Source of the DNA: Dimorphilus gyrociliatus
Lineage: Eukaryota; Animalia; Annelida
Direction of reading: 5' to 3'
NCBI GenBank assembly: GCA_904063045.1
Contig: CAJFCJ010000021.1
Coordinates: forward strand, 372,001-436,000
DNA length: 64,000 nt
Positions 17,383 to 42,022 of the stretch are shown in pieces. The first letter of the stretch is position 1. The number at the start of each line of letters is the position of its first letter. Below the pieces are notes generated by a model. That model did not search any database and had not been told where the DNA came from. It saw only the letters and a program-made list of their open reading frames with translations. A program made the position numbers and the translations under genes.

Positions 17383-18741
17383 TCAAGATCTTAGCAATTG
17401 AGTTTCGCAGGTGTCTGGGTGATTCGGACCTCGTTTCAAATCGGTTAAAGCCATTGAGTTTCGGCTTGGTGACAATGATCTGGCTCGACAACCTAAGCAC
17501 TCACCCAAAATTGCCCGAAACCGTGAACGAAAAACGCAATAAATAATGAAATTGACACTGGCATTAAATATTTCTAAAACTGTGGCAAATTCGGCTAACC
17601 ACCAAGATATTGAGCACGGCTGACCAACATCGTAGTGAGTAAGAATGAGAATAAGTCTGGATGGTAGATTACATAATATAAATACTAACACTACTATTAT
17701 CATTATCTTTGTAATGTTATCCTCACTCGCGGCCGGAGAATTCCTATTCTGTAGGCTGGCTCTTTTTCTAAGTACCACTTTTCTATAGACTATCGTCAAC
17801 TTGGTATTCAAAAATATAAGAATCAGTAAGGGTAGTCCAAAAGCGAATAGATTGTAGAAAATATTCTGATATAGAAGAGTATAAGATGTATTTATTGTCA
17901 AAGTAGATTCTACAGATGCATTCGCATAAACTTTATGCTCAAAAAAGCGTGGTACGTTATAGAGGACGCTGCATATTAAGACAGCAAAGGTAGCAGCTCT
18001 CATCCTCGTCAAACTGCACCAAACATTCGCACTGTATGGGCGGCAAACAGCCATGAAACGGGACACAGCCACAAGCACTGTAATATACATGGCAGCCATT
18101 TGACCAATAAATAATATTGGATAGGTGTAGACTCTTATGATTGACCAAGCCAAGTTCTTTTGTTGAACTTCAGAATCTCTTGACATAACATAGAGAATAT
18201 CTCTAACACTATAATGAATAACTGAAAGAATAAGAAAAACTGCATCCACAACAGCCAAACTTTGCAGGAGGAGAGAGGCAACTGGACTACACTTGTCTCG
18301 ACCAAGAACAAAAAATGAAACAAAATTTCCAACTATTCCAAATATACAGAGACTGCCGCATACTATGACATTCACGTACAAACGGTTGAGCATACAATTA
18401 TAGGGCACCGTCACATTCATTATCTGACGGAGAAGAGAGACCGACTGCAAAGTTTCAGGTGAGACTTCTCCGCTAGACGCCACCTGGTAAGCGAACGGAA
18501 CCTAGGGGCGTTTAAGCTTATAAGCATTAGAGTTTATACGAAGTAGTAAATTAATTTACATTCTGTCCACAAGTAACTAATTCCAAAATATTATGTAATT
18601 TATTAATTAATTAGCTAAGCAAAACTAGTAAAGGACAAGTTTACGTTGTGATTGGAACAGTTGTAGAAGAATGTGATGATAGTTAATTACCAGGCATGCG
18701 AAAGGACCTGCTAAAGAGTCGTATAAGTCTACGAAACTCAT
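17383..18741 (-). CDS. Class A neuropeptide GPCR, FMRFamide-receptor-like (383 aa)
   Basis: Exon 18741-18691 (MSFVDLYDSLAGPFACL, phase 0) splices to exon 18483-17383. Seven hydrophobic segments, GIVGN in TM1, LAVVD in TM2, SRFMAVCRP at the TM3 end, LYNVPRFFE in TM4, CNLP in TM6 and NASVNFIIYC..RSRFR in TM7/helix 8. Confidence 0.88.
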
Positions 18742-21800: not shown

Positions 21801-22887
21801 ATAGATCTTGTTTCAGGACGCATTATCCAACGAGAAAATAAGACCAGCAGGGATACTCGATAAAGAGAGGAGAAAGCGATTTGTTTTCCTATTATTTAGA
21901 AATTTAGCACGTATACTTTATCATTGAAAGTGCGGTATCTTTTATAACATTCGCTCATTACTACACATTTTTATTAAATATAAATGAAGAGAAGAGAGAA
22001 AAGAAGGACGAAAAACATAGAGAGAAAGATGAAGAAAAACGTCATTGGGTTTAAGAAACGTACGTATCTTTTGTTGGGAAAATTTTAATTATATCACCAA
22101 ATATAGTTGTTTGTAGTAATAAAATCAAACAGAATAGCTTTGCCTTATAGTGAATACCATTATAAGTCTCTTAATAAAGGTTAAATTGTTTGTATAATTT
22201 CTATTATTAGCACTTTTCCTGTGACTTTGTTCTTTGGAAAACAGAAGAAAAGAACTTTAATTAACGTTATTATACAAAATAAAGAATGGTGTTATCACAA
22301 ATAAAGATCACATTCAATTACCTGTGTACAAAATATAAGGATGTATAACATTAACTAATTAAATTTTCAATTAACCTGTAATAGAATTTAATTATTAATA
22401 CTAAAAGAGAGAACTATTTAACGAAACAATACAATCTTTAGAAATCTGATGAAAAATCCAAATGAATAGAACAAAAGAGGAAAAATTACAATACATCTCT
22501 TTTCCACTATTTTTTCTTGTGGGCAAAGGTTAAGTAAACTATTTCCTTATAATTTAAGGATACGGAGAGAGAGATAGAGAGAAAGAAAAAGGGGCGAAAA
22601 GGAAGACATATTTTGTTGTGTGTAACCGCAAGCATTCTGACGTAGCCATACTAATATAACCTTTAAAAATCTTATGTATTTTAATAGGTAGGCAGTAGAT
22701 GTATAAAAATGATTACTATAATTTTAACTCAGTTATTAGAAGTCGATAATAGATAAACAAAAGATAAGAAGATGTTAAAATAACAAACGGCTTTTTAGTC
22801 ATCTTTGATGATTTCATCTATAAAAAAATACGTAGTAAAAGGATAGCGATTTTAATGTTTGTGTATTAGCCAAACATTAATTTTATA

Positions 22888-23700
22888 TTATTTTGTGAAA
22901 AATGATATTGGAAAAGGTTCTTTATGCCAATTGTTTGACATTGCAATATTGTTGTATTCGCAGTTTGGACTGTAAATCTTATGTTCTTCGAATGGATCAT
23001 CATCTTCATCGAAGCCCTTGAGGCCAATAGCGCATTGGAAACATCTCAGTGCTGTATCAAAATTGGCAAATGCAAAGCCTGACAGAGCTGCCCTTCTTGC
23101 ATTCATTTTCCCATTTTTAAACGGCCAGTGATCATTAAAGCTGTTGTATCTATGCATTAGAGAGCTAAAACTTTCAAATCTGACACTTTGAGTCAATGTT
23201 ACTGAATCTGGATGAATATCCTTTTTCTCTTCGGGCTGATGATCGATGAAACACCCAGACATTTCTGTACGTTGTATATCAATAGCTTCATCTTGGAAGT
23301 TTTTACCATACGATGATAAATCTTGTTTATATTCTGTAAAACCACTTGCATTAGTTGACGCTTGTTTAATTTCATCTTTATAAAGGCTATCCACATTATC
23401 TGTTTCACCAAATGAATCTGTACTTTCCTCATCACTCGATACTTTCTCTTCCGGAGGTGGTATGAAATATGAACATGTTGAATGATGATAAGGCAAAATT
23501 CTGTTTAAATTGTTAAGTTCTATATCACACACACGATGTACTATTTGACAAAGACAACATATCAATTTAAAACTGTCAAAAAAATATCCATTTTCAACCA
23601 GCCGATATTTCATTAGACCTTCCACTGGAGAATTTTTGAAACTGATGAGCCTAATGATCTTCTTTGAGAAATCTCGACTACGTTCGGGTTTCATGTACAC
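22888..23700 (-). CDS. Intronless BIR-domain (inhibitor of apoptosis-like) protein: two BIRs, no RING
   Basis: The C-terminal BIR reads RYNSF..HWP......AALSGF......LRCFQC..GL...DEDDDPFEEH..YSPNCEY with CCHC ligands intact. The N-terminal BIR is degenerate (RLISF..SP...LVENGYF...ICCLC...HHSTC). An acidic linker separates them. Confidence 0.82.
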   Translation of the reverse strand: MYMKPERSRDFSKKIIRLISFKNSPVEGLMKYRLVENGYFFDSFKLICCLCQIVHRVCDIELNNLNRILPYHHSTCSYFIPPPEEKVSSDEESTDSFGETDNVDSLYKDEIKQASTNASGFTEYKQDLSSYGKNFQDEAIDIQRTEMSGCFIDHQPEEKKDIHPDSVTLTQSVRFESFSSLMHRYNSFNDHWPFKNGKMNARRAALSGFAFANFDTALRCFQCAIGLKGFDEDDDPFEEHKIYSPNCEYNNIAMSNNWHKEPFPISFFTK

Positions 23701-24497
23701 TTTGACTGTCTATCTGGCTTTTCAGAATATCACTTTTATATTAAGGTTATAGGAGTTTTATAACCACACTAATATAACCATGGTTATCAGAACAATCTTA
23801 TGAACATAACCTCGCGTTATCCAGAAAATTTTTATTATAGATATATGGTTATATTGATTAAAAAAGATCCGTTTTAAATTTAGGTTAACCAGCAAATATT
23901 AACAAAAAAGTAACATGAACCTCTTAAACATCCTGGTTAAGTCTAGGATTGATATTGGCGAATAGTTTCTTTTCTTCTATATTGTATTTATTATTAAAAG
24001 ATATATTGTCAATTTAATTCGAACAACATTAAATTTTTCATATTTCTCTGATTAATCGTTGCAAAGTTGAGAATGATTCAGTTTCCTTTTTGTATCTATT
24101 GTAATAAGTATTCTATGAGAGTTGTGATGAATTGATAAAATTCATTCATATTTCTGATCTTATGAATAAGGAAAATTTGAGAATTTTATCCTTGTACACT
24201 TTGCTTTCAAATTAATATATTAAATAGTAGAATTGTTGAATAATTAATTATTATGGCGCGTAGTTAATTCACAAATTGGAATAAAAAATGACTGTATTTT
24301 CAGTTAAATATTGAAACTGGAAAAGTTGTATAGATACTATAATACTGTATAAGTTACTTTGTTCAATTTTGATGAAATATAGAGACTCTTTTTGTTTGAA
24401 TTAAGCCAATTTATTCTTTTATTTTTCTTCCAAAATAAGCTACAAATAACTTTACGAATAAAAAAAGAAAAAGACACTTTTTAAGGGAATTTCAATA

Positions 24498-25066
24498 TCA
24501 TTGAAAATTATCAACTTCCTTCTTTTCGTAGACAATTGGTCGTTTTTCAAAATGAAGACCTTTCTTTTCGAAAACAACTGGTTTTTTTTCAAAATGTAAC
24601 AGCCTTTTTCCAAATTTCATTAATCGTTTTTCAGCTTCTATACCTGACTCTTCTCCGCCAACTTTAGTGGTTGGTTGATTTATCTGCTCCCATACTTTTG
24701 ATTTTAATCCGGTATACCAAAATACGCATCGGCAACATTCGACACAAGAAGATGCGCATTTAGTTTCGCAAGGATTCTTATAGAGTAGTTGGCAGCTACA
24801 TCCATCTGCTAGACGTAATCCACCAACAAATAAAAGAGCACCTAAATAAATAGATAAATGAAGAGATCTATAGCAAACAATGTTATAAAACTTTTCTATT
24901 TCAAGTTTCTTCAAAAGAACCTTGAAAGAAACAAAAATATGTTGATATACAATATATACAGTATATATATATTTAAATAATTGTATACTTAGAAAGAAAG
25001 AAAGATATAATAGGTTCAGTAAAAAGTTTTACTTAAGGAGAAAAATAAGATGCGAAGGCGGCTCAT
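24498..25066 (-). CDS. Secreted neuropeptide-like precursor (125 aa): Cys-rich module plus RFamide-like repeats; possibly a divergent CCRFamide-type precursor
   Basis: Exon 25066-25033 joins exon 24841-24498 in phase 1. Product: MSRLRILFFSLSALLFVGGLRLADG / CSCQLLYKNPCETKCASSCVECCRC...EAE-KR-LMKFG-KR-LLHFE-KK-PVVFE-KK-GLHFE-KR-PIVYE-KK-EVDNFQ*. It has a signal peptide, dibasic sites, a Gly amide donor and an upstream TATA box. Confidence 0.85.
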
Positions 25067-25105
25067 ACTCTCAAATTAATGACTATTCAGTGTAGTTGAT
25101 CCGGC

Positions 25106-25113
25106 TTTATATA
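25106..25113 (-). promoter_or_regulatory. TATA box of the neuropeptide-like gene
   Basis: TATATAAA on the minus strand, 40 nt upstream of ATG 25066, with an Inr-like TCATT near 25078-25082. Confidence 0.7.
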
Positions 25114-26180
25114 GCACTTAAGTTGATTGCGCCATATTGAAATTTTTATATGTAAAATACTGCACTTCATTTATTATTGATCAAATGGGAATAATCTACT
25201 GTTGCTTCTGTTAACTTACTAATATAGTTTCTTCTTTTAATAAGATTTCAACTGATAATGGATAAGCTCAAAGGAGTTTATAATTAGAATATTTTTTCTA
25301 AATTCTCATTAGCATATACAAATCTTCTTATTCTTTTTCGTTTTATTATTGAATTTTATCGTTTAATCGAATTATAAATTAATTTAACGAAAATTCAAAT
25401 AAATTTCTTCTTTAATGTTCTGTTTTTAAAGAATTATCTACATTTCTCTTTACAAATTTATCTATTCCTCCCTCTCTTTCATGTATATATATATATATAT
25501 ATAAAACTTTTAGTGTTATTTCTTTAAAGCTATACTGTTAAAAGTTAATCATTTTGTTTTTTCAACAATCGCCATTTTATTCTTCATTAATATTAGTATA
25601 CGTTAAAGGTTTGACATTAATTGGAGAGAATTAGGGGCATAAGATAATCTTAACAGTTTTGTTTTTCATATTGGTATTGTAGTAAAGTAACAAAAGATAC
25701 TAATAATGGCTTGATATAAATTACAATTTGTCGGGTTTAATATCACCTTACTACTTAAAGGAATTAACCTTTTAAGAGAATAAAACTAAACTATACTCAA
25801 GAGATTTTAATCTAGTCCTCTTTGATAAACCAAATCTATAAAAATTTGTTTGTTGTTTAATCAGGAAAATATGATAAGGCATCAAAACAAAATTATTATG
25901 TTGTGTGTTTTACTGAATAAATGTAGATAGGGAGGAGGAATGGGTTGGCACCAAATAAAAGAGAGGAATAGATAGATAGATAGTTTAATAAAGAAGGAGA
26001 TGGAGAGAAAAAGAAAATAGTTGTTTACAAAAGTAATCTTGTATCTGAGTGTTTTTTGTTTTTTTATCTTTCCAAAGTTTTTTAGAATACAATGACATTT
26101 TTGTTACTTTTACAAAAAAAAAAGAAAAAAATATATCCTAATTATTTTTAAACGGAATGTTTCTTTTTTTAATGAAATCT

Positions 26181-30614
<4,434 letters not shown>

Positions 30615-36594: not shown

Positions 36595-37659
36595 TTACTC
36601 ATGATCTGATATTGTAGACGTAGTTGTACCTTCAGTCGTTTTTTGGGATTTAGTTCTCCATATATTCAAAAATTCGGAACGGAATTTAGTACCAGTTAAG
36701 CAATATATATAGAAATTTAAAGCGCTATTACTGGTCATTAGTGGCACCAGTAATCTTATGACTTTAGTTAATCTTATATCTGATTCTTTTTGTGATATAT
36801 ATGTATTATTAAAATAGAGAATAACGTTGAGAATATGAAATGGTAGTGATGAAATTATGTAATATAAAGATATGCCAAGTAATGTAATTGTCATTTGATT
36901 CAATTTCTTATTAGATTTATCATTTTTCATTGTTGTTACCTCTTTTCTTTTATTATTAGCTTTAACCAATGTCCATATCATTCCAATATTTATTGTCAAA
37001 AGAACGAATGATGGAATTAAGCAACCTCCATAAGCCATAAATTGTAACATGACTTTTTCATCGAGAAATCTAGCCGTTTTTGAAACTGCTTGACAAGAGT
37101 AGAACGACATCCATTTATTATATGGGTTTTTATAAGGTATAACTCTCCCCTTTCCATAAGTATAGTAATAATATATAAAGGTAAAAAATGTTATTAGAAT
37201 AATAAGGCAACAAGATATTTTCGCCTTGAATTTCGTACATATTGATTTGGCCTTTGTAGGCAAAAAGAAGTAAATACTTCTATCAACTGTCATTGCAACA
37301 ATTAACCAAGCACTTCCAAATACAGTAAAATAATAGAAATGTGCGTAGAATGCGCAATGTAAGATTTTCGAACTATTATCACTAATAGAAAAGAAACCAT
37401 AGTAGAAATCTAAAGTAACTATTGTACATTGAAAAGATAAGGTCACTGTATCAAATATTGCTAAATATCTCAAATAAATTGACATTGTTGTATGATTAAA
37501 TCCTTTTCTAGTATTGATAATAAAACTCATAATATTACCAAAAACACCAAAAACGAAAATTAAGACATACATTACTGTACCCGAAATTGCAATATACTTT
37601 ACATATGAAAATGATGGAATTTCACCAACAAAAGTTGTTATTGTTGAATTTTCCATCAT
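36595..37659 (-). CDS. Intronless class A orphan peptide-receptor-like GPCR, paralog 1 (354 aa)
   Basis: Seven TM segments, GVFGN, LAIFD, AWLIVAMTVDRS and NSALNFYIYCLTGTKFR. Confidence 0.9.
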   Translation of the reverse strand: MMENSTITTFVGEIPSFSYVKYIAISGTVMYVLIFVFGVFGNIMSFIINTRKGFNHTTMSIYLRYLAIFDTVTLSFQCTIVTLDFYYGFFSISDNSSKILHCAFYAHFYYFTVFGSAWLIVAMTVDRSIYFFLPTKAKSICTKFKAKISCCLIILITFFTFIYYYYTYGKGRVIPYKNPYNKWMSFYSCQAVSKTARFLDEKVMLQFMAYGGCLIPSFVLLTINIGMIWTLVKANNKRKEVTTMKNDKSNKKLNQMTITLLGISLYYIISSLPFHILNVILYFNNTYISQKESDIRLTKVIRLLVPLMTSNSALNFYIYCLTGTKFRSEFLNIWRTKSQKTTEGTTTSTISDHE

Positions 37660-38931: not shown

Positions 38932-40002
38932 TTAACTTGAAGTTTTAGATTGCGTAATACTTTCTTTTGTATTCGGTTTGTAACCCCATAGTTTTAAAAA
39001 TTCATTACGAAATTTTGTACCAGTTAGACAGTATATATAGAAATTTAATGCGCTGTTACTAAGCATAATCGGACCTAACAATCTTGCATATTTTATTGTT
39101 TTTATATCGGTTTCGTTTTGAGATACGAATGTACCATTAAAGTAAAATATAATATTAGAAATATGCCAGGGAGAAGAAGATATAATGTAATATAAAGATA
39201 TGCCAACTAAGGTTATGGTCATTTGGTTTAGTTTCTTCTCAGATTTATCATCATCCTTTTTGTTCGTTACCTCCTTTCTTTTTTGGCTAGCTTTCACCAG
39301 CGTTGATATCATTCCAATGTTAATTGCCAAAAGAATAAACGATGGAACTAAACAACCAGCATAGCCTATAAATTGTATCATAAACTTTGAATCGAGAAGT
39401 CTAGCTGTTCTATTAACGGCTTGACAAACATAGAACGACATCCACTTGCTGTAAGGATTTTTAAATGAGACTACTCTTCCTTTTCCATAAGTATAATAAT
39501 AATGAAAAAATCCTATAAAAGTAACCACTGCAATTGTTGTACAAATAACCTTTGACTTGAATCTGGTTGAAATGACTTTAGCCCTAGTTGGTAGAAAAAA
39601 GTAAATACTTCTATCAATTGTCATAGCAACAATTAACCAAGCGCTTGAAAATACGGTAAAGCAATAAAAATGGGAGTAAAATGAACAATTCAATATCCTA
39701 GAAGCCATATCAGGTAGCTCGTAAAAACCGTAGTAATAATCCAATTGAACTACTACTGTCTGAACTAATAATGCTATTGTATCGATAATTGCCAAAAATC
39801 TCATGTAAATTGACATTGTTGTATGATTAAATCCATTTCTTCTGTTTATAACAAAGCTCATAACATTGCCGAAAATACCAAAAATTACTATTATTGAATA
39901 CAGTATAGTAGTTGTAATTGTAATGTATTTGGAATAAGAGAATGATGGAATTTCCCCGGTATATGTCTTACTGGAGTTATCTGTTAAATTTGAGCGTTCC
40001 AT
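38932..40002 (-). CDS. Intronless class A orphan GPCR, paralog 2 (356 aa)
   Basis: Same architecture and long identical blocks with paralog 1 (GEIPSFSY.KYI, GFNHTTMSIY, GKGRV..KNPY.KWMSFY.CQAV). Confidence 0.9.
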   Translation of the reverse strand: MERSNLTDNSSKTYTGEIPSFSYSKYITITTTILYSIIVIFGIFGNVMSFVINRRNGFNHTTMSIYMRFLAIIDTIALLVQTVVVQLDYYYGFYELPDMASRILNCSFYSHFYCFTVFSSAWLIVAMTIDRSIYFFLPTRAKVISTRFKSKVICTTIAVVTFIGFFHYYYTYGKGRVVSFKNPYSKWMSFYVCQAVNRTARLLDSKFMIQFIGYAGCLVPSFILLAINIGMISTLVKASQKRKEVTNKKDDDKSEKKLNQMTITLVGISLYYIISSSPWHISNIIFYFNGTFVSQNETDIKTIKYARLLGPIMLSNSALNFYIYCLTGTKFRNEFLKLWGYKPNTKESITQSKTSS

Positions 40003-40918: not shown

Positions 40919-42022
40919 ATGGAAATGTTCATAGGGAGAAGGAGACTAATGAACGGAACAAATGAAACGGATTGTTACGAAAATGATGCTACTTGTTACT
41001 CTGAATTAAAATATATTGTTGCAATAGCAACATTCTTTTATTTAATCATTTTAATTCTTGGTATATTTGGAAATGTAATGAGTTTCATTATCAATAATAG
41101 AAAGAAGATAAAGAATACAACAATGTCAATCTATTTAAGATTTTTGGCAATTTTTGATACAATAACCTTATTATTTCTTATATTATATTCATCTTTCTAC
41201 AATTTCTATGGATTTTTCGATATAAAAAATACTTCTTTACAAGAGTTTTTATGTACATTAGCACCGCATTTTTATTATTTTACAATACTTGGAAGTTCTT
41301 GGCTAATAGTTGCCATGACCATTGATAGAAGCATCTACTTTTTCTACCCAACCAAAGCTAAATTTATATGCACTAAATCTAAAGCAAAGATTATATGTTC
41401 ATTCATAATTTTATTGAGTTTTTTAATATTTAGCCATTATTATATTAGAGAAAAAAAAGGTATTTTTATATCAGTTTCTAATGATAATAATGCATGGTCT
41501 TCATATTATATATGTAGGGCAGTTTCAAACACTGCTAGATTTTTCGATGCAAAAATAATGATGTTAGCTATCGCCTTGCTAGCGTGTATTATTCCATCAA
41601 TAATTATATTATCTATAAATATACGGATTATTCAATCACTAGGAAAAGCTGATAAAAGAAGAAATTCACTACTAATCAAAAATGATAAAAAACCTAGACG
41701 TAAAACAAATCAAATGACATTTACTCTAATTGGAATATCTTTATATTTTGTCTTTTCTTCACTACCTTTTTATACTATTCAAATTATTTCATTTTTTCAA
41801 GAGGCACTCTATCTGAAACCATATTTCAATAATCGATTTACTAAATGGACTAAAATACTTTGTCCCATATTTATAAGTAATAGTGCATTGAATTTTTACA
41901 TTTACTGTTTAACCGGTTCAAAATTCCGTGAAGAATTGAAAGTTTTATGGAAAGAATTAACGAATAAACAAGATAATCATCTAACTAATAAAAGAACATT
42001 GGAAGATACAGTATTACATTAA
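40919..42022 (+). CDS. Intronless class A orphan GPCR, paralog 3 (inverted, 367 aa)
   Basis: Seven TM segments, TMSIYLRFLAIFDT, WLIVAMTIDRSIYFF.PTKAK and NSALNFYIYCLTGSKFR. It is divergently oriented to paralog 2. Confidence 0.9.
   Translation: MEMFIGRRRLMNGTNETDCYENDATCYSELKYIVAIATFFYLIILILGIFGNVMSFIINNRKKIKNTTMSIYLRFLAIFDTITLLFLILYSSFYNFYGFFDIKNTSLQEFLCTLAPHFYYFTILGSSWLIVAMTIDRSIYFFYPTKAKFICTKSKAKIICSFIILLSFLIFSHYYIREKKGIFISVSNDNNAWSSYYICRAVSNTARFFDAKIMMLAIALLACIIPSIIILSINIRIIQSLGKADKRRNSLLIKNDKKPRRKTNQMTFTLIGISLYFVFSSLPFYTIQIISFFQEALYLKPYFNNRFTKWTKILCPIFISNSALNFYIYCLTGSKFREELKVLWKELTNKQDNHLTNKRTLEDTVLH

Follow-up and report, generated by a model that had tools for sequence, protein, structure and literature searches.

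A single-copy gene of the annelid Dimorphilus gyrociliatus encoding a candidate prohormone with an eight-cysteine module and a cassette of Glu-ended peptides

We analyzed a 64,000-nt stretch of the genome of Dimorphilus gyrociliatus (here, the window; all coordinates are counted from its first nucleotide), in which a small gene for a putative peptide precursor lies on the minus strand at 24498-25066. It consists of two exons, and its spliced coding sequence of 378 nt is translated into 125 amino acids. The coding part of exon 1 (25033..25066, with the ATG at 25066) provides Met1-Leu11 and the first base of codon 12, and is followed by a phase 1 intron of 191 nt (24842..25032) that falls within the signal peptide. 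The donor is GTAAAA, with the GT at 25032, and the GT..AG intron closes with a polypyrimidine tract and a TTTAG acceptor whose AG ends at 24842. The coding part of exon 2 (24498..24841) contains the remainder of the protein, including the stop codon (TGA, 24500-24498).

The upstream neighbor, also on the minus strand, is a SMAP-like ArfGAP gene (26181-30596), with a zinc-finger ORF (CADC...) at 30267-30596 and a Q-rich C terminus encoded by exons 26547-26387 and 26303-26181, the stop being located near 26181. [quoted passage not shown] Three of them are single-exon ORFs that form a cluster (36595-37659 and 38932-40002 on the minus strand and 40919-42022 on the plus strand), while the fourth (17383-18483, minus strand) is on the other side of the precursor gene, 6 kb away. 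Finally, a BIR (inhibitor of apoptosis) domain is encoded by an ORF at 22888-23700 on the minus strand, which is represented by a separate 896-nt contig (22691-23586) in the transcript data described below.

The encoded protein can be divided into five parts. Residues 1 to 25 form a signal peptide, called by inspection of the residues and the mean Kyte-Doolittle value, made up of MSRLR, a 15-residue hydrophobic core (mean 2.4), and A-D-G, which, placed before Cys26, is a classic -3/-1 signal-peptidase site (V-D-G in the orthologue). The predicted mature N-terminal product starts with an eight-Cys module (residues 26-54, 24714..24800, CSC...CCRCVFWY), in which the spacing C-x-C-x7-C-x3-C-x3-C-x2-CC-x-C places 8 Cys within 24 residues, followed by VFWY. 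Next comes a variable, mildly acidic spacer of 28 amino acids (residues 55-82, 24630..24713) with a net charge of about -2. The peptide cassette (24519..24629) reads KR-LMKFG-KR-LLHFE-KK-PVVFE-KK-GLHFE-KR-PIVYE-KK in a seven-residue register, i.e., one LMKFG unit and four Glu-ended pentapeptides that abut directly, and the protein ends with the hexapeptide EVDNFQ (24501..24518), which is poorly conserved (EQETY in the orthologue). All these elements, together with the two-exon structure, agree with the preliminary description of the locus. A six-frame translation of the window contains a single in-phase heptad run of this kind, 200 shuffles contain none, and this locus alone in the window has at least 7 Cys within 24 residues. 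We found no DNA-level tandem repeat in the cassette of the window, which indicates that its periodicity is maintained at the peptide level.

Transcript evidence for the locus was found in one public run alone (X1; 2017, whole animals, kept as assembled contigs). A 2,906-nt contig of this run matched the window without a single difference and joins 24839 to 25031, a cut that is movable by 2 nt and thus equals 24841/25033 with GT..AG ends on the minus strand, so that exactly the 191-nt intron predicted beforehand is skipped. At its other end, the contig stops at 24405, 10 to 18 nt after two AATAAA signals (24423-24418 and 24415-24410), delimiting a 3' untranslated region (UTR) at 24405..24497. 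Since a second GT..AG intron is skipped in the same contig (26303/26387) and nearby intergenic stretches have no depth, the run is derived from RNA, and the absence of a spliced transcript, named beforehand as a refuting condition, does not apply. Upstream of 25031, the contig is unbroken as far as 26303 and reaches the final coding exons of the SMAP-like neighbor, whose transcript contig in this way continues for ca. 1.1 kb past its stop into the Cys-peptide gene. Assembled contigs cannot show transcription starts, and one that spans two genes is no proof of a single transcript.

Upstream of the ATG, at a distance of 47 nt, the sequence contains a TATA box, TATATAAAG (25113-25105), which the orthologue shares; no ATG intervenes between the box and 25066, and an A occupies position -3. 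The 169 nt before the ATG (25067..25235, minus strand), which comprise the promoter and the 5' UTR, are 79% identical, ungapped, to the orthologous contig L002, compared with 45% for the intron, a value that is background for this AT-rich DNA. A block conserved so far above the intron argues for a promoter that belongs to the gene itself, and we infer a separate mRNA start for the small gene. The constraint on this block is unusual, as the synonymous sites between the same two sequences are saturated. The D. gyrociliatus genome paper reports long UTRs, no operons, and no trans-splicing (PMC7854359), and so the simplest reading is that a long or read-through 3' UTR of the SMAP-like gene overlaps a separately started mRNA. 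The gene had been described as TATA-driven; the box is indeed present and conserved, but the start is deduced from it, and the contig runs on into the upstream gene.

A single orthologue (P0001) was detected, encoded on an unspliced 1,319-nt Logan contig (L002) from another sample, that of a related worm. Besides TATATAAAG and the 5' UTR, the two genes share the 34-nt part of exon 1, the GTAAAA donor, and the position of the intron, which in L002 is 211 nt long. In the Cys module, 8 of the 8 Cys and 23 of the 29 residues are identical, with a 2-residue insertion in one loop, and CCRCVFWY, EAEKRLMKFGKRLLHFE, GLHFEKRPIVYEKK, and every dibasic pair are kept, some of the latter with KK/KR swaps between the two species but never lost. 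LMKFGKR, LLHFE, GLHFE, and PIVYE are identical, while only W, QPTT, and G-x-EAE are retained from the spacer. The cassette has five units in the window and eight in the orthologue, whose three extra units are PLKFE-KR. These are encoded by 3.5 copies of a 21-nt unit with 92% identity (L002, 932-1004) and thus derive from a recent tandem duplication of one cassette unit.

The distribution of substitutions along the protein follows the same division. With the Nei-Gojobori method, applied to two sequences only and with dS saturated, dN/dS was 0.038 for the Cys module, 0.52 for the spacer, 0.45 for the C-terminal tail, and 0.12 for the whole protein, and in the cassette pN was 0.068 versus a saturated pS of 0.87. 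As judged from this pair of sequences, purifying selection is strong in the Cys module and in the dibasic-flanked cassette and relaxed in the spacer, which bears out the earlier proposal of a secreted bipartite precursor. At several units, the two species use different codons, GAA and GAG, for the final Glu of the pentapeptide, and such synonymous changes indicate that this residue is maintained by selection and did not arise by decay of a Gly. A precursor with constrained peptides and cleavage sites, a spacer that is free to vary, and a changing number of copies has the classical signature of a multi-peptide prohormone. We regard it as very probable that this is a real, expressed gene that codes for a secreted Cys-rich protein.

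Searches for further relatives gave little else. Word-indexed protein searches with the exon 2 protein and with a two-sequence profile each returned P0001 alone, and a full HMMER profile scan of 1.84 billion representative proteins found it as the only genuine relative. The other 43 matches of that scan were cassette-only matches to translated seven-residue microsatellite-like repeats, of which seven were inspected and rejected. This protein collection does not contain the proteins of the D. gyrociliatus genome itself (a 354-amino-acid GPCR ORF of the window is missing too), and absence from it is no sign of an unannotated gene. In Pfam, the only match was a subthreshold one to ELH (PF02323; 11.1 bits, E value of 0.25, gathering threshold of 20 bits) that involved cassette residues only. 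A PDB sequence profile search of the Cys module gave no match at E values up to 10, and the ESM Atlas gave no usable match to either the whole protein or the Cys module alone. AlphaFold2, run on the Cys module with a two-sequence alignment, reached a mean pLDDT of 56.5, too low for the model to be usable. No paralogue was found in the D. gyrociliatus genome (77.9 Mb, 349 contigs) at E values up to 10, and the gene is thus single copy. The motifs LMKFGKR, GLHFEKR, CCRCVFW, KFGKR, FEKR/FEKK, and CCRC matched no corresponding precursor in the parts covered of the supplements to the genome paper, Thiel 2021, and Conzelmann 2013, and a literature search for LMKFamide or KFamide retrieved nothing relevant. 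The novelty claimed at the outset has therefore held across the proteins, Pfam, PDB sequences, the Atlas, and those parts of the proneuropeptide supplements, where no described precursor has the same architecture. On these comparisons, the gene appears as a lineage-restricted member of a well-known class, the secreted multi-peptide precursors, one whose Cys framework is unmatched and whose Glu-ended cassette is unusual. It is probably not a member of a named family but a new lineage-specific hormone-like or neuropeptide-like gene.

The reading that we favor, with a probability of roughly 0.55, is that of a single-copy, dinophilid-restricted gene for a secreted precursor of the prohormone or neuropeptide type. 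The features by which proneuropeptides are recognized (Conzelmann 2013; Thiel 2021) can be found here: a signal peptide, as seen by inspection; conserved dibasic sites that flank conserved short peptides next to a less conserved spacer; and repeated units (five, or eight in the orthologue) together with one conserved Gly-KR. A difference in unit number of this sort is typical of multi-copy neuropeptide precursors. Signal peptidase would remove the signal peptide after Ala-Asp-Gly25, prohormone convertases would cut after each K-[KR] pair, carboxypeptidase E would trim the basic residues, and peptidylglycine alpha-amidating monooxygenase would convert LMKF-Gly into LMKF-NH2, all of them steps of established secretory-pathway enzymology. 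The predicted N-terminal product comprises residues 26 to 82 (57 amino acids, about 6,357 Da), with four putative disulfides and a compact 24-residue core. The other predicted products are LMKF-NH2, the free-acid peptides LLHFE, PVVFE, GLHFE, and PIVYE, and EVDNFQ. Neurons, or endocrine or gland cells, would release these products together from dense-core vesicles, and the products would then act on receptors.

Some features count against a prohormone. The amidation Gly is carried by one of the five cassette units here and one of eight in the orthologue, all the others ending in the selected Glu, and the initial view of the cassette as RFamide-like has to be abandoned; from its sequence, it would mainly yield a free-acid xxxFE set. 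It is unusual for a neuropeptide precursor to have Glu-ended pentapeptides that follow one another directly, with no acidic spacers in between. In addition, KK pairs and sites before Pro or Leu are reportedly, by the rules of Rholam and Devi, less favored by convertases, although mollusc precursors do use KR-Pro.

To a species studied for its minimal annelid nervous system, the gene adds a secreted precursor that is lineage-restricted and under strong constraint, and that catalogues based on homology would overlook. The D. gyrociliatus genome has been described as having a canonical complement of neuropeptides and GPCRs (PMC7854359). The gene also offers a test case for Glu-ended pentapeptides as signaling products, for the fold of the eight-Cys framework, and for the origin of an orphan precursor in a compacted genome. 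Lineage-specific orphan proneuropeptides turn up regularly in spiralians, and the general picture is for that reason unchanged.

The main alternative, which we consider possible but doubtful, is a secreted Cys-rich effector of gland or epidermis (antimicrobial, toxin-like, adhesive, or mucus-associated) in which the eight-Cys knot is the functional part and the KE-rich heptad tail is left uncleaved or serves as a pro-region. So high a Cys density (8 in 24 residues), in a framework that is unmatched in Pfam, PDB sequences, and the Atlas, is common among fast-evolving toxin and defense peptides, and both the taxonomic restriction of the gene and the lack of an amidation Gly in most repeat units would suit such a protein. 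However, conservation is normally lowest in pro-regions and tails, and in this protein the constraint on the cassette equals that on the Cys module. Its conserved dibasic boundaries with K/R interchange and its variable number of units also fit cleavage units better than a structural tail. Besides, defense and toxin genes usually belong to multigene families under diversifying selection, which contrasts with a single-copy gene and a Cys module with an omega of 0.04.

A bolder extension of the prohormone reading concerns the neighboring GPCRs, which the preliminary description had put forward as candidate receptors. The four ORFs are indeed 6 to 17 kb away, but they are orphans, and co-location is all that ties them to the precursor. 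Their best solved relatives are the opioid, somatostatin, TRH, and angiotensin receptors (E values of about 1e-8). The one GPCR that was searched has relatives with 44 to 49% identity in Logan assemblies and 29% in Owenia fusiformis, all of them unnamed proteins. By sequence, the four can be described as orphan, fast-evolving, and peptide-receptor-like. We regard as improbable the idea of a dinophilid-born module in which a knot with a new framework, free-acid x-hydrophobic-x-Phe-Glu pentapeptides, and LMKF-NH2 would be co-released onto these orphan GPCRs. If true, a ligand-receptor system would have arisen, and would still be linked, in a miniaturized annelid lineage, with a conserved Glu replacing the usual amide. 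The clustered GPCR ORFs also match models of Srw-type serpentine receptors.

It is very unlikely that the gene is a diverged member of a named family (CCRFamide, FMRFamide-like, CCWamide/CLCCY, trissin, or ELH/bag-cell). The resemblance of LMKFG to FMRFG or FLRFG, with Lys for Arg, would speak for such an origin, as would the weak ELH match over the cassette; membership is largely refuted by the architecture, the Cys frameworks, the scores, and the profile searches, none of which recovered a family member. The parallel drawn earlier with CCRFamide was correct in that this is a lophotrochozoan family (Conzelmann 2013, PMC3890597), and there are real similarities, namely, a small secreted precursor, a Cys peptide right after the signal peptide, and an aromatic-Gly-KR amidation site. 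However, both the architecture and the Cys spacing differ. CCRFamide of Platynereis dumerilii and Lottia gigantea is one peptide of ca. 40 amino acids with 4 Cys that itself ends in RF-Gly-KR, and in Platynereis the spacing is C-x3-C-x11-C-x4-C (...ACQAFCKANF...CLTDICRSMYRGRISRFGKR) (PMC3890597). In contrast, the protein described here has 8 Cys with another spacing, 28 residues of spacer and a KR before LMKF-Gly, Lys instead of Arg before the Phe, and a run of Glu-ended pentapeptides afterwards, so that neither a peptide ending in RF-Gly-dibasic nor the 4-Cys spacing was found.

The cassette recalls the multi-copy FMRFamide-like and YFamide precursors of annelids and molluscs: in both, short peptides whose last or next-to-last residue is aromatic stand in tandem between KR or KK pairs, in copy numbers that vary between species. 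An FKF-amide is even predicted from the YFamide precursor of Platynereis (Conzelmann 2013, PMC3890597). Those precursors, however, have a Gly at every unit, acidic spacers between units, and no Cys-rich module, whereas instead of multiple x-x-R-F-Gly units we found one K-F-Gly unit and otherwise [FY]-Glu. The ELH/bag-cell precursor of Aplysia also has several non-amidated pentapeptides next to a larger hormone, and its RLRFH and RLRFD, of the form x-L-basic-F-x, resemble x-L-basic-F-acid. Nevertheless, there is no ELH/DH44-type 36-mer here, the large product being a predicted disulfide knot, the Pfam score is below the 20-bit cutoff, and homology is not demonstrable.

As compact disulfide-rich secreted peptides from small genes, the CCWamide/agatoxin-like, CLCCY, and trissin peptides are similar to the N-terminal product, and CCWamide too ends in C-x-C followed by hydrophobic or aromatic residues. 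None of them has a C-terminal multi-peptide cassette, and the frameworks differ (C-x6-C-x(5-8)-CC-x4-C-x-C-x6-C-x-C in CCWamide and a C-x6-C-...-CC-x4-C-x-C type in CLCCY). Compared by eye with Dinophilus, Platynereis, nemertean, and phoronid sequences, both the spacing and the position in the precursor, at whose C terminus the CCWamide and CLCCY peptides lie, were different. Trissin, whose framework is presumably C-x2-C-x3-C-x3-C-x7-CC, would share the stretch C-x3-C-A-S-x-C, which might count for that family, but the loop lengths do not line up. Moreover, according to Thiel 2021 (PMC8557429), trissin-type receptors were not found in annelids. With regard to the sequences in the supplement to that study, the D. 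gyrociliatus RGWamide precursor P11866 matched two exons of the genome at 100%, which confirms the species, while the Dinophilus gyrociliatus "CCWamide-like" sequence had only a 66% genome match (C32:245090-245194), which is either a paralogue or the result of the true exon having gone unscored.

Least credible of all is that the ORF is not an independent gene but an untranslated part of the spliced 3' UTR or read-through of the SMAP-like gene, as the contig that continues unbroken from the coding exons of that gene through 25031 might suggest. Against it, such a two-gene contig shows no single transcript, purifying selection acts at the codon level over the whole protein and most strongly in the Cys module, the conserved TATA box and 5' UTR block directly precede the ATG, and the species is reported to have long UTRs and no operons.

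One further junction was observed in the same run, where a contig (depth of 66) joins 22586 to 24945 and skips 2,358 nt. Its short side has 21 letters, the ends of the skipped segment are AA..TG, and the joining point falls within an AT-rich 9-mer repeat in the intron of the precursor gene. It is probably an artifact of the repeat or of the assembly and not a splice.
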